Assembly (NCBI GenBank): GCA_001643675.2 | Contig: LSRY02000029.1 | Span: forward strand, 992,001-1,056,000 | From: Monocercomonoides exilis PA203 | Taxonomy: Eukaryota > Protista > Preaxostyla | Length of the DNA: 64,000 nt | Reading direction: 5' to 3' | Translations under genes and position numbers: made by a program | The notes under the pieces: model-generated | Told to the model about the DNA's origin: nothing | The model's input: the letters and a program-made list of their open reading frames with translations, nothing else | Database searches by the model: none | Part shown: positions 10,901 to 41,112 of the stretch, in pieces | How positions within the stretch are numbered: position 1 is the stretch's first letter | Layout of the letters: each line of letters begins with the position of its first letter

Positions 10901-13900
10901 AAGCGGATGCTGAAGATGCCGCTGCAGACGCTGTTTGTGTCGACCACTCGTCGCCCTCTGCTTCCACGTGGGTGGATGGGCTCAGCTGTAGCTGCACTGG
11001 CAATGGGGCAGCTGCAGCAGACGATGTTCAGAGAGCAAATGACAGGCAGTGTAGACTATGCAGATAGGAGAACACACTCACCATCTTTGCCTCTTTCGTT
11101 ATTGGCACCTCACAAAGAGCAGAATTCTGTGTCTTCATTGAGTGCAGTCCAACAGAAATCAGATGCTGTCTCTTTATCAGCAGTAGCTGAGCTCTCATCT
11201 TCTTCTGTACCAATTCCACCTCCACTGACTTCTGCTGATTCCTCCACCCAATCCACTCCTTCTCTATCTCTTATGGTACCATCTGTATCTCCTTCTGTAT
11301 CTCCTTCTCCCCCACCTCCTCAGCAACCTTCCCTCAGCTCTTCCGTCAACCAGCTGGCTAAACAGCTTCTGAACCCGTCGAATCTCTCAGCCACAAACCC
11401 AATTTCGAATGCCAATCAGCCAGTTGGCCTCGACTTTATCGCAACGCCCACACACATCTCTACATTCAGCGACAAAACAGCAGCATCTATGCGCTTCTTG
11501 CCAAAGCAACTGACCCAATCTTCTGTTTCATCAACTGCCAATTTGACTAACCAGACACAGAATCCGTTTGAAGTGACGTATTCGACAGTGAGCGGGCTGG
11601 TTGTGTCAGTCAACAGCGTCGATGGCACAATTCGTATGACACATGCACCGACGAGTGGAGAAGGGAATTATCTGTTTGGAAGAGGCAAAGGAGAGCTGCT
11701 GATGGCGAATGAAGATGAGTATCCGACACAGAAGCTGATTGCAGAGAGAGAAGAAGAATGCAGAAGGCTTGTGGAGAATGCTGTGTGTGAGGCAGAGGCG
11801 AAAGCAGAAGAAGGAATAAGAATGTTCAGAAAGGGAGAAGTTGTGCAAGGGATGAGAAAAGAAGTGGAAGTTGAAGTTGTTCCTGAGGAAGTGGTGGCTG
11901 AAACAAATGCACATCAGAAGAAGAAAGACGGAGCGAAAGAGGAGAAAAAGAAAGGGAATGAAAAGGAGAAAGGGAAAATGACAGAAAAAGAGAAAGCAGC
12001 AGAAAAGAAAGCCAACAAGAACAAAAACGAAGTTGTGGAAGAGCAAGCGCCATCAGAAGAGGAAACAAATGCAGCTGTTGATCCATCAACAATCACAGAA
12101 CAAGAGGCAGAAGTATTCAGAAGATGCTATACTCGCTCTCTGTTTGAATCTCTTGCCTCAACAGGATTTGAAACATGCTTTGTTCCATCTTCAAAGAAAT
12201 CAAATGGAATAACTCAACAAACTTCATCATCATCATCTTCTTCTTCTTCTCATTCTCCAAACAATCCAATGCATCGTGAATGGGGTGCTGTATGCCCCTC
12301 ACACTGCTACACCACCCTCACCCGCGAGCCTCGTTATTCGCCCAGTCAAACATCTCCTCCACACGAAGTGGAGCGTATTGTGAGTGGAATGGGCACATCC
12401 ATTGTGCGCCTGTCGAACGGTGCGGCGGCTGTTCTGCTGGCAAATGGAGACCTCTCAGCGTGCAATGGAGACGAGTGGGTGTCTGTGGGCAGAGACGGGT
12501 CGAGAGTGTCTCGCCCTCTCTTCAAGTTCCCATTGATAGACAGAACAAAGGATATTGTGCAGAAGTGCTTTGGGAGTGGAGATGAAAATGTGGAGGAGGT
12601 TCCAGTTGAATCGGAGGGATTACCAAAGTGGGTGAGAGAATGCTCACAGATGAGCGCGGAACACACAGAAAAAGAAGAAGCAGAAAAAGAAGCACAAATA
12701 GAAGATGATTCAAATCAGAAGACAGATGATGCGAATGAGAATTCAAATCAAACACAGAAAAAACAGACTGATCCACTTGGAACACCACAGAAACAGAATC
12801 AATCTTCAATGAAAACATCAGATATGGCTTTGAAGGGATATATTGAAACAAAACCTGAGCCATTGAATGCCAATCTGTCAAATACGTCCCTTCCTTCTAA
12901 TCGGCCCAATCTCTGTCGTCTTTCTCTTCCCCCACAATTCCCATGTTCGCAGCAGCTGCCTCCGATTGCGTCAGTCACCAGCACTGAAGCCGAGCTGTCT
13001 GCTGAGATCACCACAAGAGCAGACAGAGTGACCATCATCCAGCACAAGACAGGAGAGCGCCTGGTGCACCACGCAGACGGTACACGCGTCTTCCACTCGT
13101 TCTCGTTCTCGATGAATCCTGAAGCCATCTCGGCGTATGAGGCAGAGACAGGAAGCAAAGCACCAATGAAGGCAATCATCTGCATTGAACACCCGAATGC
13201 TGCAAGAGTGCTGATCTATCTGGTGCAGAAGAAGTTTGCAAGTATTGTTGGAGGGCAAAAGGGAGCATCTACTTCATCATCATCATCTTCTTCTTCTTCT
13301 CAATCATCTTCCTCTGCATCAGAAGTTGCATCATCTCCATCTCTTTCTCCACTCTCTACTACATCGTCAACAACTCAATCTCCATCTTCTTCCTCTTCCT
13401 TCTCTTCCTCTTCCTCATCGTCGTTATTAACGCCTGCTCCTCAGCTGTCTGACGTGTGGGTGCGTGACCGTGTGGTTGTCGTGCTTCCTGATGGTGCTGC
13501 GATGGAGTGGCTGGCCAACGAGCACAAAATCGTCCTTTCCAAGCCACACAACACGCATGTTCATTATGCCTCCTCTGGCTGTGTGAGCGTGTTTGTGGAG
13601 AACACAAACAAGCGCATTCCACCCACAGCTGGGCTGACAGGCAGACTTCCTTTGCTCTTCTTCAACACAAATGAAGGAACACTTGCTGTGAGACCATCCA
13701 AGCACTCGCTTCCAATCAATCCATCGTCTTCCAATGCAGACAGACCAATCACATCTGCCAAGCGCAACCCACCCAGCACACCTTCAGCCGCTGCTTCTTC
13801 TGCTCTCTCTCAGGTGTCTTCCACTCAATCAAGCTCATCATCATCATCATCAACAGCAAATGCAGCCAACAGACGCTCTTTCGGAAGGCGTGTGTTTATC

Positions 13901-16900
13901 ACCTCGTTCGAAGGCATTTCGCAGTGGGCAGTCGCAAAGAACATGCGCTCTGCCACAATCAGCAGACACATCCCAGGCGCCTTCTTGCCAGCACTCTTTG
14001 GACAAGCAAGCGATCTGTTGGGCGCCTCTCCTTCGATGCTGGCTGCCTCGTTTGGCACTCAGTCTGCTCTGAATGGTGTGAATGCAGCAGCAATGCTGGC
14101 GAGCATGCCAACAACAGCATCAGGAAGCTATCCATCTTCTGGCCTTCGATCTTCATTTGCTGCTTCTTCTATTTCTTCCTCTTCCTCTTCAAGCAATGCC
14201 TCCTCAGCGTTTGGTGCAATTAGCTCCATTTCAGATCTCCCGATGACATCTCCTTCATCTTGCAATACGGACAGTGTGTTGAGCAACTGTTCATTTGCCG
14301 AGTCGATCATGTCGCATCCATCAATTGAAGACAGAGACACGCTCGAATGGATGGAGAAAGTGGTGAAGGAGATGAAGCAGACAAAAGAGCAGCTTGAGGC
14401 TGACCTGCTGGAACACGCCAGGAAGCTGAAGAGGAAGTCGATGCAGCTGGCTCGAATGACAAAGATGAATGCATCGTCCACAATGTCCACTATGTCCTCT
14501 CTCGCCACCTCTGAGACAGCCAGCACTCACATCCCTGCTCCTTCCTCTTCCTCTGCCTCTTCTGCCCTTTCCTCCTCATCGTCTCCTCTTTCCTCGAGCT
14601 CAGGCACGGCCACAGGCACATCATCAGCCAATGGCAGTGGTACTCCTCTTTCACCGCGCAATGCCTCACCTGATGCTACTCCGAGTGGAATGCACATAGA
14701 CTCAGACACATCGACAATGAGGTTGAGTGCTGAGGAGATGTTTGAGATGGGGCAGAGAGGGAGGCAGAGGGGCAGTGTGGACGGGGCAGTCTCACTGAGA
14801 GGCAGTGAAGATGGGTCATACACAGAAGAAGTGATTCCATTTGCCAGACAGCGCTGGGTGGCACGGCTGGCAGCACTCTCGCTGCATCAGATGGAAGAAG
14901 TCGCTGCTCTTATGAGAGACTCTCGTATCTCCTTTGGTGATGATGCAAGCTCTTCTGCTGCATCGTCTTCTCTTTCTGGAGGAGGGATGATGAACACACC
15001 TTCATCTCAACCACCTCTTTTGTCACCAAACTCATCTCAACAGCCTTCTGCACAGAATTCCTCAAGAAAGACACCCAAACGTCCCATGCCGCGTCTCTTT
15101 GTCATTCGTTCTGATCGCTCTGGCTTTGAGCTTCTCCCCCGCTCTGCTGTCTCAAAACTTTATCCTCGTTCGAATGATCCTGTTCAGTCAGACTTCACAC
15201 GCCCCATCGTCACTCTTCCTCCTCTGATCACACAAAGCACACTCAACAACTTCAATCACCAAGAAGGAGATGGAGGAGCAGCCACACCAACTGGATCATC
15301 ATCATCTTCTTCTTCTTCTTCAATGTCTTTTTCTTCCCCTCCTTCTCCTGCTCTTGCAAGCTCCAGTCACAATCCTTCTGACACAAATGCTGGCTCATCT
15401 TCTACTGCTTCTTTCACTTCTTCATCTTCGTCAGCCTCAATTTCTTCAACAACAACAGCAACAACAACAAATACTTCATCATCATCATCTTCTTCGCCAA
15501 AAACTCTGTCAGATGTGGATGTTGCGGCCTTTGATATCATTTCATCTGTTGTCACCGATTTAACACCTCAAACTTCCTCCCAATCAGTCCAATCTTCTTC
15601 CTCTTCCTCTACTTCCTCTTCCTCTTCTCTCTCTCCACTCTCCAGCACTGCCAACATCTCTTCTCTGCGACAGAGCCAAGTGAATGAGATTGTCCGCAGA
15701 CTCTCTCAGCCTCTTCCTGCTCTCTCTGGCCATTCAGCATTGGGACTTCCTGTTGCTCTGCAGCACTTCTCCTCTTCTTCTTTGCCTTCTTCCTTTGTGG
15801 CTGCTGCAGCTGGACAAGATTTATCGTCTGCTGTGTCTTTGCTGAATGGAAATCAAACAAATGGAGAATTCAGCTCTTTTGCCCCTTCAACAAATCAGCA
15901 ATTATCTTCATCTGCGTCTCAACAGCACATCAGCACCCAAACGTCATCTCAGTCTTCATCCTCTCTTCCCCACTGGCTATCTTCTGTTGTGTTTGTGCCT
16001 TCATCCTCTTCTTTCCTGCCTGCCTCGATCGTTTCACCTGCCCGTCTTCCGCCTGAGCTCCTCTGCACAGCCGATCCACACCGCATGCCATTCGCCCAGT
16101 TCTACCAGCAGCACGCACACCCATCTAAAGTGAAGGTGGTGGAGCAGAAGACAGCAGCCGATGGGGAGAACAGTCAGAACGAAAAGGACGGTGATAAAAG
16201 CGCAGCATACACACCTTCTTCTCTTCGTGCCAGGCATTTTCGAACAGCTTCTGCATACAAATCACCAAAAGGCTCTCCCACACGCTCACCCACACGCACA
16301 CCGACCACACTGCACATCAGCAGGCAGCAGGAGAAGAGCAGAGGAGAAGAAACAGCACGCAGCCCGCAGCCGATTCAAGGCCTGTCATCACCAACACGCA
16401 GCAGCGAAACAGCAGGCAAAACAGCCTCTTCTCTTTTGGACTCACACAGCACTCGCACCAAGCGACTTCATCAGTCTGCCTTTGCCATCACACCATATCC
16501 GAATCCACCGCCTGCCCTGACCATCTGCACACCATTGATCAGGCCAGTCTCAACATCATCGTTTACTTCATCATCCTCCTCATCATCTTCAGAGCATTCA
16601 AGACATTCTGCCAAAAGACGCTCAGCAATGGTATCTTCTGCAACTTCACCGCTTTTACCACCTGTTGAGGCAATGGCAGAGGAGCAGTCATCTTCCACAA
16701 CTGACAGCATTTCTCCTTCTTCTGCATCATCATCTTCTTCTTCCACTATTAATCCTTCTCCTCTTCTCTCTGGAATCCCCGAAGAAATCAACTCGCCCAT
16801 GCCATCCTCCTCTTCCTCCATTCTTCCTCCTTCTGCTGCCATTCTCCACACAACCATCGTCCCTTGCACTTGCCCTCCAAACTCTCTGCGCTGCACCTGC

Positions 16901-19900
16901 CATCCTGTCAGCATCACAGGCAGATCTCAGCCATTCATCACATCTGCCTCGTATCAGTCCTCCACTCTCAGCAGAATCTCCTCTATGCAATCGCCTACTG
17001 GTTACAATCAGTACACTCACTCTGCATCTGACAATCTCCTCAGCTCAATTCCTTCTCCCATTGCATCTGCCAGCCCTTCAACTGCCTTCCCAACTTCTCC
17101 TTCTCTTTCCTCTCCTTCCCCAGCTGATCGGCAGATTCCTGTCTCTTCCTCTCCTCTGTCTGATAACACCTATCTCTTCTCTCAACCTCAGTGCACTTCC
17201 CTCCGCCCACTGTGGACACCTTATCATCCTGACCTCCTCCGCTTTGAGCCGCGCAACCTGAGAAAGACGTTCCTTCCGTCATATCTCGATCAGATGGGCA
17301 TCACTCGCACAGACATGCAGAGTATCATCGATGGAATGGCTCCTATTCCTCACCCACCTATCGTTTCGACTGCGCACTGTGATGATACACATTCTCATTC
17401 TCATTCTTCTTCTTCTTCTTCTTCTTCTTGCTTTACGGCTGAAAGTGGAATTAGCACTTCGAATCAATCATCACCAATCCACAGCCCCAAATCTTCACTT
17501 TCATCGTCTCTGCAATCTTCTCCTCAATCACAATCTGATCCATCTGCACAAACATCACAACTCCAGATGACTCTTGAACAGCTGCTCCAATCTGTTGAGA
17601 CACCTTCAATGACTTCTTCTGGCTCTCCTCATTCTTCCAATAGAGCAAGCATAAATATGACAAATGCATCATCTTCCTCTTCCAGCCAGTTTTCTTCAAC
17701 AGCCTCAATTGCTTTCACTCGGCAGCTTATTGAGCATCCGGCGCCTCCTCCTTTGCTTCTGCTGTTTCTGTTTGAATATCTCTCAGCTTCCACCTTCATT
17801 CTGTCAGCACGCGCAGACAAGCTGTACAGCAAGCTGAATGTGGGGCTGCATCGAGCGGTGGAGACAGCCTGGAGCACATTTGTTAGGTCAGTTGACTGGA
17901 TTGTACAGGCCTGTGCACACACACGCCTCAAGGGGACAGTACAGCAGCAGGTGATTGCTGTGGTGAAGGCGATGCTGAATGGAGATGTAAAGAAGAATTT
18001 GGAGAAGTCGAAGGAGCCAAATGAGAAGGAGAATGCGAATGACAATCGCTCAGACAAGAAAGGCGACAAAGAGAAAGCAGAAGAGCCAAAAAGGAAAGGC
18101 CGCTTTTCGTCACTTTTGAGCTCCTCCAAAGACGGCTCGTTGGGTGGACAGTCGAATATCCTGCAGACAGGCTCAGGCACCTCTTCGTCCTCTGCCTCCA
18201 GCTATGATCTTTCTCAGCTCATCAGCCAGCTGCCTTCTCTCCATCTCTCTTCGAACTCCATCAGAAATGATCCATACTTTGTGGAAGCAATGCTCACACT
18301 TGTGCGCACAGACCCTGTTCTTAGGCGTGTGGAGGAAGCCATCCAGGCACAGGAATATTCAGCTGCTCAGCTCGTTTCCGGCAAGTTCCGAGCAAACTGT
18401 GTTGTGGGAAACCCATCTTCGATGTCCCCACAACTGACACGCTCGCCACTCTCACAGACGTCTCATCTTCTTCTCCCAGCTTCAGCTGGCGTTGCTTCGC
18501 TGATGTCATCTACCAATTGTTCTGCTTCGTTTTATCCTTCATTTTCGCTTCTCTTCCCGTCGTTCAACGCATCCATTGCAACTCTTCCATCTGCATTTGC
18601 ATCTCGTGCGATCTCTCGCTTCGGAAAATGGAGAGGATGGAGCGGTTTTGGCGGATGGCGAGGAGCTGTTCATTTGCCAACAGGAGCACCGATGCCTTCC
18701 TCTCAGCAAGGGAAGACAGCTGGCGAGAAGCAAATGATCCGATTTGTTTCTTCGCTGCATCGTGAGAGAGCAGAATGTGTTGCACAGACGCAAAGACTTC
18801 TTTCACTGCCTGAGGTTGGTGGCGTCAGCAGCGCATACAATGGAGCTATTCTCGAGTGCAGCATCGCAACTGCTGCTGCAAGCAACGGTTTGTTCATCGA
18901 TGGCTATGGACTTCTGAACGATGCGCTGACGCAAAACCAAAGAGCTGTGCTTCTTTCGCAGCAAAATGACTTGGCTCTGTTCCCTCGTCAGGTCATAACC
19001 ACTCAGAATGCAGAGGGAGCAGCTGGTTCAAAACGACACTCTCGGTCATCCACAGTGGCTAAAGTGTATGGCACGTCTGGTGCTCTGAAGAAGCCTCAAA
19101 GCTCGTTCAAACTAAATGCACCTGCACAGAATCAGGCACATTCAACAGCAAGTGAAGGATCTTCAAGTGATGGTTGTGAAAAGGGAGAAGACAAGAAGAG
19201 ATCAGATGAAAGCACTTCAAGAATACAAATTGAAGAATGGATGGAGATGCAAAGGAAAGAGGAGATTCTCTACGAAAGACCAGAACCTGGCAAGAAGCTC
19301 AACTATTTCGAGTCTGCTGAAGGAATTGATGCACTTGCGAATGACACAGCCAGCATTGGAAGCCAGCGCAGTGCAACTTATGCGATGTCATCTGCCTCCA
19401 ACACACACAGATTTGTTTTGCCACCATTCGAAACACAGCCAGGCTCAGCGACAGCAAAACAGAGATCAAATCAAAACGGGAATGGACGAACTTCATCAGC
19501 CACATCGGCAAGGTCTGCATCGCAAGAGCCTTCAACCAGTCCTTCACCAGCACCTTCTGCAACTTCATCGAATGGAATGACAGGAGGAACTTCACAAACA
19601 AGAGGCGCCTCGTTTTCTGTTGTCGAGCGAGCAAAAATGGAAATTGCACTTCAACAGGTTCCCTCTCCTAATGTCACAATTGATGATGCGGCTTTCACAA
19701 GCACTGAACGAAAGAGACAAAGAAATGCGAAGTCTGCGTCGCCAACTGCATTCAACAGACTGTCAGTTCGACAGCTTCAAAGATCTTTTTCAGGAGAAGG
19801 AGATGCAGTTGATCTTTCTTCACAAAATGCCTCTTCTTCATCCTCTCGGAAGGAAATTCCTCGACTGCCAATGCTTCATTTCCTCAATCGCTCTGAACAA

Positions 19901-21064
19901 TCAACTTCTCTCACAATGCGAGAGGCTCCTCTATTCTCAACAACATCTCGTGCTGGTGAGTCATCATACAATCAGCCTGCAACAGAAAGATTGCGAGGAG
20001 GAATACAAACAACTCGTCGTGCAGCTACAAATCTTGGCTTCTATTCAGTTCAACCGAAAATCTCTTCACCAAGTGTCACACTTCCTGCTGCTCTCAACGC
20101 AACTGCTGCAACAGGAATGAAACATGGTGTGACACCACTGAACTTCGACGTTCTCCGCAAACGCGAAAACGGAAGCGAAGGAGATAGAACAAACAACGGA
20201 CTTCCTTCTGCTGCTGTCACATCAGATGGCAGGAGGGTGTCCAGTCAAATGATGGAGACAATTGGCAGACTGCAGCGTGCTGTGTGTGTATCGCCATCGA
20301 AAGCAGCGCGTATTGCCCAGCTGATGGAGAGTTCTCCAGCCGCACCTGTTCATCCACCGTCTGTGCATGTCAACGCTGTTGGTGAGCCGAGGCGGTCTCC
20401 GGTTGTTGTGAAGGAGTTTTCTAAGACGAAAGCACCATCAGAAGTGAATGTAGCACAGCTGATGACAACTGGGCTTGTTGAAAGGGAAACAAAGACATCA
20501 TCGGTTGGGCTGGCGAGAATGAAGGGAATGCCAATGAAGGACTTTGAAATAATTCCTGATTCACTCAACTTTGGTACAATTTCAAGTCTGGGCAAATACC
20601 AAATGACATTCGTTGTGAAGAACATTGGTGTGGATAGCTCTCGTTTCACTTACACTCTGTTTCCTGCAAAGGGAAGCTGCTTCCGTGTGAAAGGCGTTCC
20701 ATCACTTGTTGCGCCTGGAGTAACATATCAACTGGCTGTGGAGTGCGATGGATCAATGGCACAGACGATGCTTGCACTGAAGAATGAGCCAGCAGCTGCA
20801 CACCCGGGAATATCATCTGCAACAGTGGAGCAAGTGAATGACGAACACAACGGAGCAGCTATTTCTGTTTCGGATGTGCTGAAAGTTCAGACTCCTCTGA
20901 GTATCATTTCGTTATCTCTTCGTGCAATTATTGTTGAAGATGTTTCGCCTGCTTCACTCCGCTTGTCTCCATCAGTAAAATTTGTCAGCACGGTTGGAGA
21001 GCAATCGCATGCGCAAACAACAGATCAGTCAAATGCGACACAGCAAGCAACAATTCAGAAATAG
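1962..21064 (+). CDS. SPAG17: SPAG17/PF6-like axonemal central-pair (C1a projection) protein, ~6,330 aa, inflated by Ser-rich insertions
   Basis: Exons 1962-2117, 2179-2322 and 2366-21064 splice in frame. SPAG17-like blocks occur in the expected order: VEELPP..EDSLLV, EVERIVSGMGTSIVRLSNG..VLLANGDLS, ITTRADRVTIIQHKTGERLVHHADGTR, PRLFVIRSDRSGFELL, and a C-terminal PapD-like domain FEIIPDSLNFG..VVKNIGVDSSRF..VAPG. Confidence 0.85.
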
Positions 21065-21672: not shown

Positions 21673-22939
21673 TTACCCAAATAGTTTTGAATTATCGTCA
21701 TCATCATCGTCGTCGTCACCTCCCTTATGTTTCGCAAGAAAATCTAAAACTTGACTGGCAGAATCCTGATCATTCTTTTTCTTTCCACTTCCCTTCACCA
21801 ATGCAAACAGGTCATCATCATCGTCTCCATCGTCGTTGTGTTTATCATTTTTAGTCTCCTCTTTTGTCGAAGAACTTTCGCTCTTTTTTGATGTTAAAAA
21901 GTCGAAATCTTCATCATTGTCAAAGTCAAGATTAACTGTCTTTCCAGTTGAAGTTGGCTTTTTGGGTTCAACTTTAGGCTTTGATTGTGACTTGCTTTTC
22001 TTCTTCTTTTTGTCAGAAGTTGAAAGCAATCCATCCAATTTGGACATATCGGTCTCCAAACTGGTTAATTAGAAAGCAATTCAAAATGTCCAAAAATATT
22101 TATTTTTGATGAATAAAAAGTAAAGCAGAAATGAACAAACGATGAAATAAAATCTGTTGTGTCGGTCAACTGAGTATCCAAAAAACTTAAGTCTCTTTTC
22201 GGGCCTTCAGATCCAAGTAATTTTTGAATTGTCGTATCTCCTTTTGAATCACTAGCAAAAACGTTATAGTAGGAAATCTTATCCAACAAACAAAAAATTT
22301 TTAAATTGATACCTTTCAAACATCACCAATTGAGGTGCAGCCTTTTTCTTTGGAGATTTTTTGCTTGTTACATTCTTTTTTGTTTCTTTCAGTGCAACAA
22401 AAATATCTTCTTCATCTTCTGAATCGCTTTCGTCAAATTTTGATGATAACTTTAAAATATCTTTCGTTAAAGTTTAGTCATAAATATATAATATAATTTC
22501 TTTAAATACCTTCATCCTTTTCATCTGATGAAACATTTCTTTTCTCTTCCTTCTCTTTCTTTTCATCATTTTTTGAATTGTCTTTTGTGTCAATATTTGA
22601 TGTGTATTTCACGTTATCAGCAAGTGGATCATCGTCAACAGTTTCTTCTTCCTCTCTAAAAAGAGGCTTTTTTGTAGGCTTTTGTTTTGAGACAGTCTTT
22701 GATGATGGAAATAGGCAATCATCTTCACTTTCGTCATTCTTTGTTGGCTGCTTATTTGAATCTGATTTCAAAGTTTTTTCAATAAAACAATGAATTATAT
22801 TATAAGAAAAATAATATAAATGTTAACTTTGCTTTTTCTCTGATTGAGAAGGTTTTGAAATGTTGTTTGATTTTTCTTCACTAATTGATTCAACAGGTGC
22901 ATCTGCAGAAAGAGGATCGTAATCGTCAGAATTTTGCAT
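21673..22939 (-). CDS. Acidic/Lys-rich, probably disordered hypothetical protein, 5 exons
   Basis: ATG at 22939 (MQNSDDYDPLS). Four GT-AG introns (e.g. 22762-22827) join the ORF fragments in frame to the TAA at 21673. The protein has repeated acidic-LF motifs and ends in KLFG. Confidence 0.7.
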
Positions 22940-23083: not shown

Positions 23084-24382
23084 ATGTCAAAAAGAGTAAA
23101 AGACGATTCCCAATTGACTTTTTTAAATTCGAAAAGGCCTTCGTTCGATGTTGATGTTTTTTCAGATACTAAAGATAAATCTGGATACTCAAAATATGTT
23201 GTTGGGGATGAGGAAGACGAGGATATAGTTATACCAGATAAAGCAGATTTATCTGTTGGAGATTGGAAAAGCGTAGCTCAATCTTACGGAAATGTTGATA
23301 AATTTAGAGACGAATTGGCAACAACTGCAAAGGAGCAAGATGTTTTTAAAAGTGCAAAGCCAAGGCGAATAGCAGAAAGAGAAGATTCATATCGATCAAG
23401 ATGGAGAGATAAAAAACTGAGCCCACCAAGGCAGGATCCCTTTGCAGTTAAACAAAATTCAGAAGAGAGAAGCTACAAAGACATTCTTAAAGAAACAATG
23501 CTCCAAAAAGAAAGAAAAGTTTGAAAAATTCATAATTACTATTGTTTGTATTATTTTCTTTAACACTATTCATTCAGGAGCTTTATAAGAAAATTGATGA
23601 TGAAAAACGAAAATCAAATGAAAAAACAATAACGGATGATGAAAGACGAAAAGTATTCGAAAATTTTTTGATCATTAACTTTTTATGAATTTTTCGATAT
23701 TACGTTTTAGATTGCGGAAGATCTAATTAGGAAGGCCAAAGAAATAGCATCTAATCAGAAAAAAGATCAGGAGGAGCAAACTCCCAGAAGTACTTCAAGA
23801 TGGGACACTGCTGGCGATTCTGTAAAAGACTCTGATAAAATGAAGCAAAAAGGGCGATCTTCAATGCGGAAAGAGATGCTGGAAAGAAGCGGATTCAAAG
23901 TGCCTCTCGATGCAGTTGTAGGAGAGCCAAGCAAATGGGTTGTGAACGTGTTGAGGAAGGGAATATTCCTCAACAAGCATCAGTTCCCACCATCATCTCA
24001 GACACACACTTCATCCACTTCACCTTCTTCATACGATGATTTCATGCTTTTTGGGCGCAATGATGAAGTTTGCGATGTTCACACAGACGATGTGTCATGC
24101 TCCAGAATCCATGCTGTGCTTCTCTTCAGGCACATTCACAATGAATCCAAGCGAACCTCCTTCAAACACGATCCCAGCGCCTTGCTATTTTCAGATGTTG
24201 AACAGAAAGAGGAAGGAAAAGAGGAGGATAGAATTGTTCCATGCATTTGTGACAATGGCAGCACAAATCAAACGTTTCTGAATGGAAGAGCGCTTCCTCC
24301 TCACACATTTGTGGAGGTGAGGGCAGGTGACATTCTGACTTTCGGCACTTTGGAAGAAGATTTTGAAATACAAAATAAATGA
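23084..24382 (+). CDS. Chimeric splicing factor: SF3B1(SAP155) N-terminal region fused to a SNIP1/Pml1-like FHA domain, 393 aa, 3 exons
   Basis: Exons 23084-23518, 23578-23652 and 23711-24382 are joined by phase-0 GT-AG introns of 59 and 58 nt. The N-terminal part RRIAEREDSYRSR..LSPPRQDPFA..RSYKDILKETMLQKERKEL..SRWD resembles SF3B1. The C-terminal part LFGRN..CDVHTDDVSCSRIHAVLLFR..DNGSTNQTFLNG..GDILTFG is an FHA domain. Confidence 0.85.
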
Positions 24383-25051: not shown

Positions 25052-28000
25052 TTATTTTGCAGAATAATGTAATCTTTGATACTGTTTATCCTCTCCCCTT
25101 TGGCTGGTTGTTTCCTCGAAATGAAGGGTTTGTGGCTTACCTGCTTCATCTGAAATGACACAAGCATGCACACAAAGGAATGCAAACGATAAAACAAAAA
25201 AAGAACAATAATAAAAATATTATTATTGAATATAAGAAATATCAGACCTGTTATGAACAGCCGATTATCAGCCAAATAAGGCAACAATTCAATGGCAGTA
25301 TCGATCACTGCCAGATGAATCCCGTACGAAAGCTTCAATGTGCTGTTTTTCGGCTCCAGTGGGTGGATCAAGCCTTGCTGTTTCAGGTTGTTTTCTCTCT
25401 GATCTTCCAGTGCATCTTCAGCATCAGACAAAAGCAGATCGTTCTCTGAATCGTCATCGCGTATGAAGGAGCTGAACTTCAATCTGGAATCAGTCTTTTT
25501 CTGTTTGCAATTGCTCTTTGAATTGCATTCATTATCATTGCAATGGCAGGAACTGCTTGAAGAAGAGATTAGAGATGTCCGTGTTAATGGCGAAGGTGCA
25601 TGAGAAGATGAAGATTGAGCGGACAAAGAAGGAGAAGAGCATGATGATGATGCTGCAGATGATGACAAAAACATTTTCTGCGGTGTTGATTGAGAAAGGG
25701 TTGACATCTTTCTCATGATCACATCCCATTCTGTTTCCAGTCTTGATGGAATGCTGCAACACTCAAAGAACTCTTTTCTCCTTTTGAATGGAATTGATCG
25801 GGATAAGAATGTCTTTATCTGATACTGATTTGCATCAGAAGGAGTGGCAGATGAGAAGACGATGTTGTCTGTGCACATCGAAAAGGGCTTTTCAGACATC
25901 GCAATCTTCGCAATGTCTGCAACAATCCTATCGGCTGGCTGGTGTTCTGGTGATTCGTCAAAGCGTGTGATGAACGTGAGTGACTCTGGCAGTCTTTCAA
26001 CCACTGAAAGCAGAGTGGAGAGGAGGAAGAACGAGGAGCATGGGTCGCAGAACTGAGGGCAGCTGAGAATGAGTAGGAAGAGATCAACGCCACCTTCTTT
26101 CAGGAAGTCTCTTCCATTTGCTGAGTGCTTGTCAGTCAGATTGGCGACGGCGCAAGTGGCTGAAGGGAGAATCGAGGTGGATGCTTCCAAACGAGCTGGC
26201 TCGGCGGATTTTGATGAAGCTGCAGCAAGTGCCTTCTGCCTGTAATGCGAAGAGATCAGCTTCAGAATGACTGAAATAGTGCCCAGTTCGTAGAATGCGT
26301 CTTGAAGAAGCGAATTTGCATTGATGACTGATGCGATGATCCACAGGCAGTTGTCCAGTGTCTCGTCCTTTGCAAAGTCCACAAGTGAAATAAGATTTGA
26401 GAGAGAGGACTTCTCATGTGCAGCATCAATGGCCATTGAGTGTGTAACAAGTGACAAAATTGCTCGTGTCATGTTCAGCTGCACTTCTGGAATTGGAGAG
26501 CCCAGAAGATTGAACAGCTTGAATGAAGAATATTTCTCCACTTTGCGTCGAAGGCTATGATTATAATAAAACAAAGGGAAAAAATCATCAAATTTTCATT
26601 AATTCAAAATGATAAGGTAAATAAATAGTTAAACAAAAGAGAAATTAAATCATAAATTGACAAAAAAACAAAATTCATACTAATCTGTTCTTGACTCATA
26701 AGTGAACCCATCGAAAGTAATTGGATAAATTTCTTTGTTTCCTTCACCCTCGCAAAAGTGCACAATGATATACGACACAAGAATCAATATCTCAATTGGT
26801 GCTCTGTTTGATGCCAGCACATCTGCAATCAGCTCCACTCCATCTCTTATTCCGCTTGTGGTGTCATTCTCGTTTTCAGCGACGGGAGGTGGCTGGGATA
26901 TTTCAACGATGTGTCTGATTGTCTCGCTCCGCTGTGTGTCCACTGCCATCCGGTAGAGGATGTTCCAGCAGATGAGATCGTTCTCTGGAGTCTGCCTGCC
27001 AATGCGTGTGTCGTTCACCCAGCGCTCGAGGAAGAATGCGAACAGACGATAGTTGATGATCTTCCTGTTGATCCACACTGAATGCACATCAGGTGTCAAC
27101 AGCACATACTTTGCAGACGGCTGCTGTCCAGGCGTCAAGTTGTATGAGAGTGGGTAATACTCCGTCGCTGAGAACGGAGGGAGCTTCTCAATCGCTGAAA
27201 TCGGAGTGAGCGAAGGCGGAGACTGCATCGCAGTCAGAAATGACCCAAACTTCCCTTCGCCAACAAAGTTCAAGCGAGATGGGGCTTCTCTCTGCCAACG
27301 CGTGGGCACACAGCCAAAGGCTTTCTCTCTGTGTGTTGGAGGAAATCGCTCATTGGTAAGAACAGTGAAGGAAGGAGCTGGTCTGACGATGGTGGAGCAT
27401 AATGAGTTTAGAGCCAAAGTGTTGATGAAGTATGATAGGGAAAGAAAGATGAAGCGTTTTAGTGTTTTTACCAAATATTGCACATTTTCTGCTTTTGTAC
27501 TCAAAAGAGCAAATGCCCTTTGAACCACGCTCGTAAAAGTGAATGCCGCCAGATGAGGAGAAAAGAAAAGAGGAGAAGAAGGAAGCCGCTTTTCATGTTT
27601 GAATAACATTTCTGGATCGCTGAATGTGTCAAAATACATTTCTGACTGACTTTTGCCACTATCAAAAGATAAAGATGCGCCTCTTGTTTGTTGTTCGTTG
27701 TTGATTGGTCTTTTATCTACAGCTGCAGCAAGCACAATCATCGACAGCAACCGAACAGCAAAAGTCTTTGCAGTGATTGAAAACGGCGGCGGGCGCAAAA
27801 CGAAGGAATTTGCGAGATACTCTGCCTGTTGTTTCTTTGTATCGTTTCTGACATTTGTTCGATGGTTTGTTAAGTTCTCGTTTTCATTCAATTCTTCCTT
27901 TATGTCTGAGCAGCTATCTTCACATTCATCAAATGTGCCTCGTGACACAGCAGCAACAAACTGCTGTTGAGTGAAGAGACATGAGCCAATAATCGCAAAA

Positions 28001-31000
28001 GCATTTGGAATGGTGTTGAGAAGGATGCGAACAGATGAAGGATCCATCGAGCAGACAGAGTGGAGAGCAAAGAGCAGAGCACATCGAACTGGAGGAGATG
28101 GGTTGAAAGACGTGTGAGAGACAGCTGGGATGCTCAGAATGTGCAGCACATTGTGGAAGAAGAAGCGATCTCTTGCGACGTCTCGTGCATTCTGCGCATT
28201 CAACGCACAGAAGTATCCGATGCACAAAGCAGCCAGGAAGCATCTTTCTTCGGAGATGGACAAGACACACGAAGTCTGCTGGTATTCTTTGTTATTAGCA
28301 CACGATGCAGGGAGTGAGGATGGGCAGTGCGGAAGGCGTAGAAGAGAAACAAGAAGAGGGAACAGATTTGAAGTACGGACCTGCACAAATGAATAACCCC
28401 TTCTTCCCAATTCAACCAAAGTGTGGAGAGCAACCAGAAACGAAGCTGAGTAGATGCTGCTTTCAGAAGAAGACAGGACAAAAGGTGTGAGGCGAATGGC
28501 TGTACTGATCAGATTCACTCCTCCATTCACTTTCATTGACAAAGACATTTTGTCGCTGTGAGAGCGAAACGTGAGGCCGCCAAATGAGCAGCTCATGGCA
28601 ACATAGAGACCTCTTCCTGCAATGCAGTAGAACACAATGAGCTGGTTCAGGAACGAAAGGAACTGCTTTGTGGTGAATGTGCATGAGGGTTGTGTTGAGA
28701 AGTTAAACGATGGTAAAATCGGCTTCTGGAGCAGATCCTGCATCCTTTGTGTTGATGAAATGTGGTTTTGAATGGCAGTCACAACAGGCGCAATCAGCGG
28801 GTGTGCCTTGTTGACTGGTGGAAGTGAAGCAATCTGGCAGAAGGTATCGTCTTCGCTGTGGATGGAGCTGTAGAGCATCTGATAGAGCGGTGTGTCGCTG
28901 AGTGGGAGGATGTCGATGGCAGAGCAGGCAGACGAGCCTTTGTCGTCTGCACTCGACAGATCAGCTGCATTGCATATGCTTTTGATGCACTGCTGGGGCA
29001 TCGTCCTTCGCATTGCATCGCTCTTCTCCACGAGAATGACAACCAGCTTGGCAACCTCACAGCGGAGTGGGACGGACGCCAAGGGAGACACAAGCAGAGT
29101 GCACAGAGACTCCATCACATTCGGCAGCTGTGTGAGGCATTCACAAAGCTCTTCTCGTGTGCCCAGCGAAGGAGAATGCTCCAGTTTGTTGCTTTCTGCT
29201 TGATGTTGTGTCTTCGGAATGAGTGAAGTATTCCCACCAGATGTGACTGTCAGGAGAAGCGACTGTATCTGCCTGTCTTGTGTGGCAATAGATTCGATGT
29301 CTCTCTTTGCCTCGTTGACGACTTCTTCCATTGGAGCATCGCCTTGAGAGATGTAATACGTGGAGAAGGAGGAGATGACACCACAATAGTCAGATATGCA
29401 GACAATGAGGCGCCTGCAGACTTCACGTAAAGTGGCTGGGACGCTTTCAGAGAAAGGGACACAGGAAAGAGGAGGAGTGCAGGTGGAAGGGAGAGGCAGG
29501 GCAGAGAGGAAGATGCGCCCTCCGTCTGGCTGAAGAGGATAGGGCTGGTCGAGCAGGCGGGCAAAAGAGGACTTCAAGGAGGAGGCGGAGAAGGATGGGA
29601 CGAGAGAAGAAGAAGAAGAAGAAGGAGAAGGAGAAGGAGATGACAGAGAAGAAGAGGATGAGGATGAAGACAGTGAAGGAGATGAAGAGGAAGAGGAAGG
29701 AGAAATATATTGAGTGAATGAAGAATTAGAAGACACAGTGAGTGTAGAAGCAGATGAGGAAGACATTGACGGTGGTGGAGGAGGAAGAGAAAGTGCTAAG
29801 GAATGTGACACAGTTTGTTGGGAAGATGGCTTTGATGCTGAAGAAGATGAAAGAGCATTTAATTTCTGAGGATTTGTTTGAGGAAGAGGTGGAAGAGAAG
29901 ATAAAGAAGAAGAAGATGATGATGGAATTGAAGATGAAGGTGGCAGTGGAACAGAGGATATTAAAAGAGAAGAATGAGAATTCGAAAATGGAATACCATT
30001 TTCCTTTAGACTACTTTTAGGATGAAGTTTTTGAAGAGAAAATGAAGTAGAAAGAGGCATATTTGAAGAAGAAGAGGAGAAAGGAGAGGGAGAAGAAGAA
30101 GAAGAAGACGATTTTGTAGAGAAAGAAGGTTTTGGAGGGACAGGCAAGGCAGTTGGGTGAAGAGAGCCAGCCCAGCGAGGGATGGGTGGAGGAGGTGGAA
30201 GAGACGCCTTTTGGTTCTTGATGAGTGTCAGATACGAATAGAAGTTGCTTTCTTGTTCGTCTGTGAGGATGCCATTGGGAGCGGAGATGAAGGAGAAGTA
30301 TGGATGCAAAAGAAGAGAGAGGGTTGAGTTATAATGTGAAGATAATGAAGAAGAAGAAGAAGAAGATGATGATGATGAAGAAGCAGATGATGATGAAGCA
30401 GATGCAGATACAGACGCAGAATAGCATATCTGAGACAAAGAATCGTTCATTGCTTCCTTTGTGAAGAAGAACAGCTGAAGAAAAGCAGTTTTTCTGATCA
30501 GATTTCTGAGAGATCGTTGAACGATGGCAGAAGAGGATGAAGAGAACTTTTTGAAGATGGCATAATTTTGAGAATAGAACAAAGACAAAGTGGCTGGCAA
30601 TGAAATTTCTTCTGATTTGCTTGTTTCTTCTTCTTCTGGTGCTGCTTCTGCTTTTGTTTCTGCTTCTTCTTCTTCTTCTTCTTCAATCTCTTCAGCTTCT
30701 TCCTCTTCAACTTCTTCCTCAACTTCTTCATCTTCATCTTCATCTTCATCTTCATCTTCTATGTCTTCTTTCTCTTTCTCCTCTTCCTCTTTTTTCTCTT
30801 CTTTGCATTCATTTTCAATCATTAAATCTTCCTTCTCTTCCTCTTTTTTCTCTTTCTCTTCAACAAACTCATCTTTTTGGCTTTTCTTTCTCTCCAATGA
30901 ACTTTCCCTTTTCAACTTCTCTTCTTCTTCTTCTTCTTCTTCTTCTCTTATGACCATTTCATAATTCTCTTTGACATCTTCTTCCATTGGCAAAGGCTCT

Positions 31001-34000
31001 GGTTGAATGTTTCCTCTGTCTTCTTCTTCTGTTTCTGTCTTGTTTTGTTCAATGGAATTCTGTTCAATAACTTCTGGTTGAATGTGTTCGTTTTCTGATT
31101 CATTTGAAGAATTTAATTCTTTCTCTTCTTTATCATTCTCTTGTTGTTTTGTTTGTTCGATTTCCTTTGGTTTGTCATCTTCTTCTTCTCCTTCTCCTTT
31201 TTCTTTTTCTTTTTCTTTTTCTTTTTCTGTGTTTGATTCTTCTTTGTTGTCATTATTCATCTCTTCTTCAACAACTTCTGGCATTTCTTCGGTTTTGCAC
31301 TCATTTTCTGTATCAGTCAGATTTTCTCTGATATCTTCCGTTTCTTCGCTTTTTGCGTCTGTTATCTCTTCTGCTTGTTTTGTTTTATCGCTTTCATCTT
31401 CCTCTTTCTTTTCATCAACCTCTTCTTCTTTCTCTTCTTCTTTCACTTTTTCTTTCACTTCATTTTCCTTCTTCTCCTCTTCTCTATCTTTCAACTCTTC
31501 TGTTCCATTCTTTTCTGCCATCTCCTCTGTTGACATCTTCAATGATGGCTGCTCGTCCAAATTATCATTTTCTCCATTTTCTTCTTTCTGCTCCTTCTCT
31601 TTCTCATCTTCAATTGACGATTCAACGTCTTTTCTTTCTTCTTCTAATGAATCGTCTTCAATTGAATGCTTTTCTTCCATCTTTTCTTGGCTGTTCTTTT
31701 CATTGGCATCATCTTCAAGTTGCTCTTCTTTCTCTTCATTTTCTGACTTTTGCGCTAAATCTTTCTTTTCTTCTCCTCCTCCTCCTCCTTTGTTTTCTTT
31801 TTTTTCTTCACTTTTATTCTGTTCAGATTCAATAACCTTTTCTTTCTCTGATTTATCTTCTTTATCATTTAGTGTCTGTTTATCACGAATCTGTTCAGAA
31901 GATATATCTTCTCTCAAATTTGATGAATTGTTGTTTTCAGCTATTTGTTCATTGCTCATCACAAGCACTTCTGGTTTGTTCTCTTCTTCTTCTTCTTCTT
32001 CTTCTTCTTCTGACGATGACGATGATATAGTCTGTTCTTCTGCGTTATTCCTGTTAGATAGACTTTCTCCAACTTCCTCTTCTTTTTCATTTTGTTTGTC
32101 AACTTCTTCTTTTTCTTCACCTTCGCTTTCCTTTTTGCATTCTTGTATTTCACTTTCGTTTTCTGCCTTTTCTTGCTCATTTTCTGGTTCTTCTTTCTTT
32201 TCATTTGACTCATTTATTTCTTCTTCTTCTTCTACTTCTTTTGCATTGCATTTTTCTTCTGAAGCAGAAGCACAACTCCTCCTTTTTCTCCTAATAATCT
32301 TTTTGACAATTCTTTTCTTCTTCATCTGTTTCCTTTCAGATATCATCATCTTCTCCTCCTCCTCCTCATTCTTCTTCTTCCTCTTCTCTTCCATCATCCC
32401 ATCCTCTTCCTTCTCTTCCTTCTCCTTTCCTCTCTCACATCTTTTCCCTTCTTCCTCAAATGAATGACACGCAACCGCCTTTCCTATCACCACCACTGTC
32501 TGCTCATCCAGCAATGCACTCATAGCCTTCAGAGCACTCCTTTCAATCAGATTTCCCACTGAAACTGGATCTCTTCGACGGGAAGGCATTGCCAGCAGCT
32601 TCGCCACACGCTGAGGGAAGGAAAGAGGAGCAGGCGGAGGAAGGATGACGATGGAGCGGGTGAGTGGAAGGGAAGATGAATGGAGTGGATCAGAATGTGT
32701 GAGTGTTATGGCAGAGGGGGGAGGAGGGGGAGGTGGGAGAAACTGAGAGGAAGATGAGGAAGAAGAAGAGGAGGATGATGATGATGAAAAGGAAGAGGAA
32801 GATGAGGCAGAGGAATAAGAGTTGAAAGGACTGTTCATCGAAACAGAAGGATAAAAGATAGAAGAAGAAGAAGAAGAAGATGTTGATGATGATGATGATG
32901 GATGAGTGACTAATCGGAGCGTGTGTTCTGATTGAGTGTTGATGCTGTCGATGATTTGAGGATGCTGTGCAAGTGGAGAGAAAGGCAGGGGAGGAGACAT
33001 AACATTCAGAGGAGAAGGAGAAGGAGAAGAGAAAGGAGAGCTCCAACTAAATGGCTGAGGGATGGATGCTATGAAAGGGGCAGGTGAAGGTAGATGATGG
33101 GAAGAAGAAGAAGAGGAGGAGGAGGAAGAAGAAGAATAACAAGAAGAAGAAGAAGATTGTTCCATTGAAACGAGTGAGAGTTCTGTGTTTTTCTCAGCTG
33201 AGCGTGCGATTAGCTGCCCTCTCTTCATTGCCAGCACATCAGCATCTTGTTTGAGTATCCACAAGATGAGTGAGAAATAGTTCAGTTTTGCACATTCAGA
33301 ACGGAAGAAGGCGCTGACACTGGAGAGAGCAGCAGCAAAACAAAGGAGAGTGGCGAGGGAGGCGCCAGAGACAGAAGAGAGAAGCTCTTTGAGGACAATC
33401 TGGATGGAAGTTTCGTTGTTTGTGGAAGGATGCTTGAGAGATGAAGAGGAGGTTATATGGGCAATGATTCTTTTCTGTTTGGAGAAGTGGAGAATGAGAG
33501 AGGCTGCCAGCACAGACAGAGGAGTTGTGAGGGCTTCGCGCACGCAGAGCTCGTTGGTGGAGAGGAGGACAGGGGAAGTGGAAGGAGGAGGGGATGGGGA
33601 GATGGCTGAGAAGGATGATGAAAGAGAAGAAGAAGAAGACAAAGGTGTTGTTGGTGATGGAGATGGAGATGAGGATGGAGAACAAGAAGAAGAAGAAGAG
33701 GCTGAAGCAGAAGCAGATGATGAATAGTAATCTCCTTGTGTAGAAGCATCCAACTCGGTTGAGTAAGCAAGAAGCTCAATCACTTTGTAAAGTGCAGTGA
33801 AATCATACTTCTTTGAGCAAGTGAATGAAGAAGACACAAATGGAAGTGACTGGATACCCTCAAAATAATCAGAAGAATCAGAAGAACTTGATGAGTTTGA
33901 TGAGTTTGATGAATTTGATGAAGAAGCGCTGTCAGAACTGTCAGGCGATGCTGTTATCTTCTTCTTCATCAGGAAGTTTTCAGCGCCAATCCCAATCTCC

Positions 34001-37000
34001 GCAAACACAGTGATACACGCCACTGCCAATGAAACGATTGACTGGGGGTACTTCTTCTGGTCAACGAGCCTCAGAAGCGAAGAGAACGTCTCTGGAAACA
34101 TCTTCACTGCGAGCATCTGGTTGCTGTGGTCGAAGAGGATGCCATTGAATTCTCTGTCGCTCAGCTTCTGCACAGCTGTTGTCCTGAGTGAAGGAGGTGT
34201 GCGCACAGAAGACAGGAAGATGAGGTCGAATTCGCAGGATTTCTGAACAATCTCTGGGGGAAGAGAGCGAAGGCCAGCACACACCCAGTCACACGCATGC
34301 AGCTGCTCGAGGGTGATTCTTTCTCTCTCTCCTTTCTGGGCAATGGAGATGAGGATGTCGAGCACAGATGACTGCAGAGATGTGTTTGGGATGCCCAGGA
34401 GTGTCAGAATGCGAGGGAGGGCATTGAACACCACATCCAAGTTGACTGCAGACTCCATAAAGACAGGCACAAGCGTCGACGCCAGCGTCTGGTCAGCCAA
34501 CGAGAGGCGCTTCATCTGCTCGGCATTCAGCAGCTCTGGAAAGATGCCATCCCAGAGATCAAAGTATTTATCTGGTGGGTGTGTTTCAGAGAGGCGTATG
34601 AGAGCCAGCAGAACTGCGTGTTGGATGGTCGAATCGCCCACTCGTAGGCTTTCATGCACCCATCGCAGACCAGCAATGTCTGGATCATCAACAAGATCTC
34701 CTCCAGTGAAGAACACAACCAGCGCCTCTGTTGCTGCCTCACGTAAAAATGAATGATTGCTTGTGGTGGTGAATGATGAAAGAGTGTACAGACAGCCACG
34801 CACGTTGAGTGTGACGAACTGCTTCAGCCTCTCTCTCTCCTGCATGATGCTCTTCAGACAGCGCATGGTGCCTATGCAGAGCATCGGGTGTGTGTCTCTC
34901 ACTTTCGCCAGCATGTCCCCAAACAAGAAGCGGGTGAAGGAGGTCATTGAGTTCTTGTTGCGGATGGCGTGGTAGTTCAGATTGACCATCTCTGCAAAGA
35001 CAGTCGCACGCACGCGCGCTGCAGAAGGCACAGTGGGGGAGAGGAAGAGTGGGAGACAGGGGGCAGGCTGAGGGGCAGAGAGCGTCTTTGGCTGGAGGAG
35101 GGCAGAGAGAGGGAAGGGAGGCGTTTGGGCACTCAGGGCAATCACGTTGTAGATCCAGCAGTGCTCAGAGAAGGCCTTTGCGATCTTCTGCTCGTTGTTG
35201 AAGAAGAAAGGGTTGTGGGAGGAGAATGTGGTGAGAGGGGAGATGTCATTCATCGAAGAAGACGAGGAGGAAGAAGAGAAGGAAGTAGAAGATGATGATG
35301 ATGAAGATGAAAAAGAAGAAATAGCTTTTGTCTTCCCCTTCATCCTGCTTCCCGTCATCTTCATTGCAATACTTCTGTTTTCTGGAAGCAGCATCACCTT
35401 TGATGTCTTTGCAGCTGTTATCGCAAAGGGAGGCGGTTCAGAGTCCATCAGACGTGACATTGTCTCGTTCTTCTCCTTCTCCAGCATCTCTGCATCGTCC
35501 AGTGTTGTCCATGCATTGTGTCTTTTGAGTACTTCTTCCAAGACAAGTCTCATTACTGGCAGATCGAAGTGCAGGCGGAAGGGAGGGAGGAGGAGGAGGC
35601 GCATGATGAGGATGCCTGCTTCATAGAGGAAGCAGACAGGGAGGGATTCTGTGTCATCGGGGGAAGATGACGAGGAAAGAGAATGAGGGGATGGTGAGGA
35701 AGAGAGGAAGGGAGAGCGTTTGGAAGAGGAGTCGAGAAGAGGTTGAGAGGGAGAACGGTTGAAGGAGTTGGTTGTATTGAATGTGTTGTTTGTGTTTGTT
35801 GTTTTGGAAATGTTGGATGAATTGGGAAGAGGAGGAAGAGAAGGTGCATTAGACAGAATGTTTGTCTTTTGGGGAAGGGAAGAAAATTGAGAGGGGAAAG
35901 GAGGTGGAGGAGGAAGATTTTGAAGAGGGGTTGGAGGAGATGGCATAAATTGAGAGGAAGAAAAAGAAGAAGAAAGAGAAGGAGAAGAAGAAGAAGAAAT
36001 AGATTGAGAAGGAAGAGCATTTTGCTGTGTTTGATTCGGAATATGACATCTGGCTTCACCAAAATGAAAGAGCTGCCTGTTTGTTGGAGGATGGAATTCA
36101 AACAGATTCTCTTTCTGTTTTTCATTCTCTTCAAAAAACAAGCTTTCCAAATGTGTCTGTTCATATGTCTGCTCATAGGACTCTATCAGAAGCTCATCTT
36201 CTGTCTTCTCATTGTTCAGTCCACTCCCAAATGGAGGAGAAGACAATGAAGAAGAAGAAGAAGAAGAGGGAGAAGAAGAAGAAGATGCTGATGAAGAAGA
36301 AGAAGGAGAAAGAGAAAGAGAAGAAGGAGATGAAGAGTCAGCCAATCCATCATCTATCCCCATTGAAGATGTAGGTGCCACTGCAATTGAGAGTTCTGGC
36401 CCAGCCGACGACAAAACAGACAGCTGAGCAGCTGAAGGGAAGATGTCGCTCTGAGTGAGGGTGAGGGAGGAGGTGGAAGAGGTGGAAGAGGAGCCTTCGG
36501 CAGCAGATGGGCTGAAGGTGTCGTGGAGGGCATAGTCTGGAGATAAAGCTGGGGCAAGCTGACTTTGTGGGGATAGTTGAGATAAATCGTGTTGAGGCTG
36601 AGTAAGTGATGTTGGAGAAGGAGAAGGAGGAGGAGAAGAAGAAGAAGAAGAAGAAGAAGAAGAAGAAGAAGGGAAAGGAGAAGGAGAAGGGGATACAGGT
36701 GAAAGAGAAAGGCCAACACTTTGTTTGCCATCAGTAACTGATGAGTTGTTCACCTGTTGTTCCTCACTCTTCACAGCATTTCCATACGATGCCTCAGAAC
36801 TTGTGTGATTTGTGCTCTTCTTCTCGCTCACTTCGAACACGATGCTCAGCAGATGCAGAAGAATGCGCCACCAAAAGCCCAAATTGCTGGTGACGTTGAC
36901 TGTCGCCAGCATTTCATTCAGAAATGAGAAGAAGAAGGCAAAGCGGAGGTGTCTTCTTCTGTTGAGCTCTTTTGTTTTGAGGGAAGATTCAGTGTTTGTG

Positions 37001-41074: not shown

Positions 41075-41112
<38 letters not shown>

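Follow-up and report, generated by a model that had tools for sequence, protein, structure and literature searches.

The closest described systems are the N-terminal domain of SF3B1 (human aa 1 to about 205) and the FHA-domain subunit of the RES complex (SNIP1, DDL or Pml1). Two papers from 2026 deal with these elements in human: the FHA domain of SNIP1 reads SF3B1 phosphorylated by CDK11, binding its TP repeats and recruiting RES (PMC13194972), and PRP8 is the docking site of the extreme SF3B1 N-terminus at an early stage of spliceosome activation (PMC13332222). According to the latter work, aa 30–100 of human SF3B1 dock on PRP8 RT in an early activation intermediate, the pre-Bact-1 map shows aa 121–177, and pT426/434/436 are located at the SNIP1 interface (PMC13332222). 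This early docking, on the RT/linker region of PRP8, positions the SF3B1 tail for the CDK11-type kinase. NIPP1 (PPP1R8) is a further FHA protein that binds phosphorylated SF3B1; its FHA domain is N-terminal and is followed by PP1-binding parts, with no SF3B1-like module. The FHA domain of kanadaptin (SLC4A1AP) belongs to a related subgroup.

Here we analyse the predicted gene MONOS_9353 from Monocercomonoides exilis PA203, which lies in a 64,000-nt stretch of contig LSRY02000029.1 (the window). The earlier note on this DNA, made without database searches, had read the gene as a Rosetta-stone fusion of an SF3B1 N-terminus with an FHA domain, possibly accompanied by an SF3B1 that lacks the corresponding part, and regarded the architecture as undescribed. 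Both homologies and a module-less SF3B1 gene were found, and our literature search retrieved no account of such a fused protein.

Gene model and the two halves of MONOS_9353

Reading of the sequence predicts MONOS_9353 as a gene of three exons (window 23084–24382, plus strand) separated by two GT..AG phase-0 introns (Table 1). The spliced translation is identical in a local comparison to the public 393-aa record P0001 (MONOS_9353, KAH7821620.1 / XP_067725478.1), annotated as "putative FHA domain", which bears out the three in-frame exons and the 393-aa product proposed in the earlier note. In the database searches the exons were used singly, and later the public 393-aa record. The AlphaFold2 (AF2) model, based on the family alignment, has a disordered segment (aa 1–60), short helices at aa 61–109, and a helix at aa 131–192 with pLDDT of about 90 that spans both splice junctions; the motif at the junction of exons 2 and 3 (KTITD.ERR.IA) is uninterrupted in the relative P0003. 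Exon 3 encodes the end of this helix, one TP with a ULM-like SRWD, a linker and the FHA domain.

Table 1. Features of MONOS_9353, with nucleotide positions counted in the 64,000-nt window and residues numbered in the 393-aa protein
Feature	Position (nt)	Strand	Residues (aa)	Remarks
Exon 1	23084..23518	+	1-145	SF3B1-N-terminus-like; ATG at 23084, GT donor at 23519
Sub-motif 1, FDVDVF..GYSKYV..EEDED	23144-23224	+	21-47	Motif reading
Core, DVFKSA..RRIAEREDSY..SPPRQDPFA..RSYKDIL	23339-23488	+	86-135	Motif reading
Intron 1	23519..23577	+		59 nt, GTTTGA..ATTCAG, phase 0; excision reproduces the public protein
Exon 2	23578..23652	+	146-170	25 aa; part of the long predicted helix continuing the module
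Intron 2	23653..23710	+		58 nt, GTATTC..TTTTAG, phase 0
Exon 3	23711..24382	+	171-393	223 aa, plus stop TGA at 24380-24382
TP and ULM-like SRWD	23780-23806	+	194-202	TP at aa 194-195, SRWD at aa 199-202; motif reading
SNIP1/DDL-type FHA domain	23936..24379	+	about 246-393	PF00498, PDB matches, AF2/Foldseek

Among PDB sequences, aa 68–144 of exon 1 matched aa 84–165 of human SF3B1 (E-value 1.6e-5), and exon 1 also aligned weakly to yeast Hsh155. A profile built from 13 genuine SF3B1 N-termini and run against the M. exilis genome (82.3 Mb, 101 contigs, six frames) gave a single match, namely aa 17–145 of exon 1 (E-value 6.2e-25). When 18 fused proteins were used to derive an HMM of the module, it matched 167 of the 183 long proteins collected, nearly all of them SF3B1. 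Colinearity with the N-terminal domain of SF3B1 extends from the acidic YD..LY..GY..SI motif onward, and the two share DPF..IA(D/E)RED.Y..SP.R.DPFA, R(S/T)Y.D(I/V)M, a long helix, and a first ULM-like RWD with a TP. All SF3B1 motifs of the colinear region that the earlier note had placed at aa ~20–205 were recovered in SF3B1 order, and the region ends, as described there, in a single ULM-like SRWD with one TP. Unlike SF3B1, MONOS_9353 ends its similarity after this first RWD and carries a W after REDxYR.R as well as SPP. We also considered that the likeness to SF3B1 could be an artefact of charged low-complexity sequence; this is excluded by the profile E-values and the order of the motifs.

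Pfam assigned no family to exons 1 and 2, and no Pfam family appears to exist for the extreme N-terminus of SF3B1. As the earlier note had observed, MONOS_9353 has no TP/ULM array, and Pfam detected neither the p14/SF3B6 site (PF08920) nor HEAT repeats in any of its exons. Lacking the p14 site and the HEAT repeats, MONOS_9353 is therefore not an SF3B1. Judged from its sequence, it is confirmed as a genuine fusion, in which a module from the SF3B1 N-terminus is joined to an FHA domain of the SNIP1 type.

The SNIP1/DDL/Pml1-like features noted earlier in the C-terminal half were substantiated at the level of family, sequence and fold. Exon 3 matched PF00498 with 49.1 bits (cut-off 20.7; E-value 7.8e-13), its best PDB sequence matches were DDL (2e-9) and SNIP1 (4.8e-7), with NIPP1, kanadaptin and Pml1 also retrieved, and the top Foldseek matches of the AF2 model were the FHA domain of DDL (1e-12) and SNIP1 in the human pre-Bact complex (5e-12). 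This places the domain in the same FHA subtype as SNIP1/DDL/Pml1, with which it shares a W-containing preamble (PSKW) and the S-C-S-x-x-H-A motif. NIPP1 resembles MONOS_9353 in the first half of the FHA domain (FGRN..CD..SCSR.HA) but is the weaker match overall (2.7e-6), and kanadaptin is recovered by Foldseek with 5e-12. The FHA domains of family members are clearly of the SNIP1/DDL type: P0005 and P0013 match kanadaptin with 1e-13 and NIPP1 with 1e-7 to 1e-12, as against 1e-21 to 5e-28 for SNIP1/DDL. Human, plant and yeast SNIP1/DDL/Pml1 are, for their part, devoid of the SF3B1-derived N-terminal module.

In the AF2 model the FHA sandwich occupies aa 246–392 and is interrupted by two low-confidence loop inserts (about 262–280 and 313–343). 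The FHA motifs are FGR (284–286), SCSRIHA (299–305) and GSTNQT (353–358), and all residues that are invariant in the 18-sequence family alignment (G285, R286, S299, S301, H304, N356 and T358) are retained; the predicted phosphothreonine pocket (Gly-Arg, Ser, His, Asn) is intact. By analogy, the ligand would be expected to be the same as that of SNIP1, i.e. the phosphorylated TP sites of SF3B1 (PMC13194972). We compared by eye in the alignments the residues K265, K301 and R365, with which human SNIP1 binds phosphorylated SF3B1: the first two seem to have counterparts in K245 (PSKW) and R302 (SCSR), whereas the position of R365 is occupied by E (GTLEEDF in MONOS_9353 versus GSTREY in SNIP1). This substitution, together with the two large loop inserts that SNIP1 does not have, indicates that the specificity of the FHA domain may have shifted.

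About 16 FHA loci are present in the M. exilis genome. Near-identical pairs of FHA genes on different contigs (C23:460817-460972 and C44:670694-670849; C13:765066 and C6:1220466) suggest recent duplications.

A family with the same architecture

An exhaustive search with exon 1 returned 70 matches, many of which are proteins of 280–460 aa with the architecture of MONOS_9353. We collected 22 fused sequences, with 11 named species from three groups: Preaxostyla (M. exilis MONOS_9353, Paratrimastix pyriformis, where the protein is annotated as SNIP1, and Trimastix marina P0008), Heterolobosea (Acrasis kona P0011) and Amoebozoa (Dictyostelium firmibasis, Acytostelium subglobosum, Tieghemostelium lacteum, Pelomyxa schiedti, Phalansterium solitarium, Paradermamoeba levis and Planoprotostelium fungivorum). 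A reading of the fusion as particular to one lineage does not hold. The sequences from Trimastix, Phalansterium and Paradermamoeba are transcriptome-derived single ORFs, and both halves are therefore contained in one ORF of one assembled transcript.

The fused modules possess a signature of their own (REDEYRARWRKRKLSPPR.DPF), whereas that of SF3B1 reads REDEY..RR.NR.ISPER.D(P/A)F and continues into RWD/TP repeats. In a maximum likelihood tree of 68 modules, calculated from 94 columns and with a weak backbone that does not give the order of ancestral states, the labels grouped by architecture and not by species, and none of 500 label shuffles was as clustered. An arrangement with the 22 fused modules on one side of a branch and 17 SF3B1 modules on the other was not rejected by the AU test (p 0.39). 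The spread of the family and its own signature indicate that the fusion event is old, possibly with a single origin; on the same two grounds, a recent lineage-specific split was considered and ruled out.

SF3B1, SNIP1 and Bud13 in M. exilis

The SF3B1 gene of M. exilis was located with PF08920 at G000:C69:406373-409720 (L005:4373-7718) and encodes 1029 aa. It begins with a first mini-exon (MSSSRWDKTPVVKS..), followed by an intron and a second exon that contains another SRWD, the p14 motif and then the HEAT repeats; the protein starts with MSSSRWDKTP.. and reaches the p14 site at aa 82. The public model P0081 (1029 aa) uses the same ATG. Between this ATG and the end of the upstream gene, which has the same orientation, lies an AT-rich spacer of 680 nt that contains no module-like exon. 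The question raised in the earlier note, whether the HEAT-repeat gene is without the first ~200 aa, is hereby answered: SF3B1 of M. exilis lacks the N-terminal module, the sole genome copy of which is on MONOS_9353. The remaining tail is minimal: ahead of the p14 site it has only two RWD motifs and four TP sites. Just after that site, the equivalents of the human TP sites T426 and T436 are retained (VPLMTPARRLTSTP). For comparison, human SF3B1 has 28 TP sites and that of T. brucei 13. A weak PF08920-like match was also seen at G000:C25:349895-350062 (L003), within another giant ORF of 5442 aa.

SF3B1 proteins with a complete N-terminus that lacks the module were found in M. exilis, in Trimastix marina (P0086, 1006 aa, starting in the TP/RWD repeats) and in Physarum polycephalum (1085 aa). 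An intermediate state is seen in SF3B1 of Sappinia pedata (P0194) and in the JGI sequence P0137, which retain sub-motif 1 (YD..LY..GY..SI, acidic) without REDEY..SPER.DPF..RSY, so that the module may be made up of two pieces that can be separated. The full module is found on SF3B1 in animals, plants, an ichthyosporean and several protists. Both genes were readable in two species, M. exilis and T. marina, and there the pattern is complementary, with the module on the FHA protein and not on SF3B1; in Amoebozoa, the seven species with the fusion are not those in which the short SF3B1 was seen. Complementary placement is suggested by SF3B1 of Trimastix and of Physarum, which is without the module, and by that of Sappinia, which has no more of it than sub-motif 1. 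More generally, and with confidence that stays short of even, we put forward the tentative idea that the module is a separable unit whose carrier depends on the lineage: SF3B1 would carry it in animals, fungi and plants, whereas in Preaxostyla, Heterolobosea and Amoebozoa the carrier would be an FHA protein of the SNIP1 family. On this view, placement on one protein would exclude placement on the other, and the split would lie near the root of eukaryotes.

A separate, canonical short SNIP1 gene of five exons is present in the same genome (G000:C47, about 849.0–850.2 kb, minus strand; L016:1069-2192), and a match to Bud13 was found on contig C22; a search for both as stand-alone genes had been proposed in the earlier note. 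The C47 protein starts just before the EPNYKQ-SGAL motif, and its FHA domain is much closer to SNIP1 than that of MONOS_9353: its last exon matches human SNIP1 with 9e-15, compared to only 4.8e-7 for the entire exon 3 of MONOS_9353. Because of this closer canonical SNIP1, MONOS_9353 is by sequence comparison a paralogue, and not the orthologue, of SNIP1 in M. exilis. With a separate SNIP1 and a Bud13 match in the genome, MONOS_9353 would not be the sole FHA subunit of RES, and the "rewired RES" of the earlier note finds no support. Given the canonical SNIP1, the target of the MONOS_9353 FHA domain could also differ. A different situation may exist in Acrasis (P0011) and in the sequences P0007 and P0032: behind the module they have the entire C-terminal half of a canonical SNIP1, with PN(F/Y)..SG.L, and the fused protein may well be the RES subunit there.

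In the FHA motif of the C47 protein (HPSTSSQHA), the equivalent of human K301, which is needed for binding of phosphorylated SF3B1, is Ser; MONOS_9353 is basic at this position and is without an equivalent of R365.

Proposed role and competing explanations

Residues 12–85 of MONOS_9353 correspond to the human SF3B1 segment 30–100 and aa 100–170 to the segment 121–177. Because SF3B1 of M. exilis is without the module and the single genome copy is on MONOS_9353, we propose that MONOS_9353 acts as a SNIP1-family spliceosomal adaptor that would supply the SF3B1 N-terminal module in trans while being tethered by its FHA domain to phosphorylated SF3B1, a reading to which we assign a probability of roughly 0.55. 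SF3B1 of M. exilis would either have lost the module or never have had it. The FHA domain would bind the phosphorylated TP sites of the short SF3B1 tail, presumably beside the p14 site, which is the position of SNIP1 in the human pre-Bact and Bact complexes, and through this tether the putative PRP8-docking module would be brought to SF3B1 without a covalent link. The RWD that has been retained may still serve to recruit a UHM protein. A predicted complex of the module (aa 1–130) with M. exilis PRP8 (human-equivalent 885–1660) scored 0.00, which speaks neither for nor against docking. The PRP8 gene itself was found at G000:C47:143806 to about 151100 (minus strand; L037) as an uninterrupted stretch of 2430 codons, and its product closely resembles the human protein (2948 bits).

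The most serious competitor, which we regard as less likely, is that MONOS_9353 goes back to an old partial duplication and has become a regulator in its own right instead of a replacement, the module simply having been lost from SF3B1. Such a protein could be a competitor or decoy at the sites on PRP8 or on UHM proteins, or could have a role outside splicing, as has been proposed for plant DDL (miRNA processing) and for SNIP1 (transcription). An ancient paralogue with its own role would fit the fused modules' distinct signature (REDEYRARWRKRKLSPPR versus REDEY..RR.NR.ISPER) and the grouping by architecture (0/500 shuffles; AU p 0.39); the presence of a canonical SNIP1 in the genome also speaks for this reading. 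However, a module conserved in 167/183 long proteins, nearly all SF3B1, exists in exactly one genome copy, the pattern is complementary in both species in which both genes are readable, and the retention of the ULM-like RWD and of both sub-motifs argues for preserved original contacts.

It is improbable that MONOS_9353 is the working RES subunit of M. exilis, i.e. its functional SNIP1, with RES thereby carrying the SF3B1 N-terminus. The separate short SNIP1 has the EPNYKQ-SGAL motif and the closer FHA domain (9e-15 versus 4.8e-7), and MONOS_9353 has no clear copy of this Snu17-binding-type motif, even though its FHA domain is of the SNIP1/DDL type, the Paratrimastix orthologue is annotated as SNIP1, and the modules of Acrasis P0011, P0007 and P0032 are fused to a complete SNIP1 C-terminal half with PN(F/Y)..SG.L. 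Finally, an erroneous joining of a neighbouring SF3B1-N fragment and an FHA gene, for which one could cite the ATG at 23840 as a possible start of a 180-aa FHA-only ORF, is highly improbable, as both introns are canonical, short and in phase 0, the reading frame stays open from 23711 onward, a confidently predicted AF2 helix runs across both junctions, and the same colinear architecture recurs in the transcriptome single ORFs of Trimastix, Phalansterium and Paradermamoeba, with 22 fused sequences in all.

The family unites in one polypeptide the two elements described in the 2026 papers, and in at least two species one of them is missing from SF3B1. The fusion is independent evolutionary evidence that these elements form a functional unit, and it shows that a part of SF3B1, although conserved in most of the lineages compared, can reside on another protein. 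Current annotations ("hypothetical", "FHA domain", "SNIP1") overlook the SF3B1-derived half. The dictyostelids with the fusion are tractable organisms for testing the poorly understood N-terminus of SF3B1.

MONOS_9353 is flanked by giant uninterrupted ORFs at window positions 2423–21064 (plus strand, 6213 aa) and 26680–42111 (minus strand, 5143 aa); Pfam returned no match for a 4000-aa stretch from each. On the opposite strand, a short ORF (window 22823–22939, minus strand) starts with an ATG that is 145 nt away from, and upstream of, the MONOS_9353 ATG, which, if this ORF is a real first exon, would suggest a short promoter region common to both genes.
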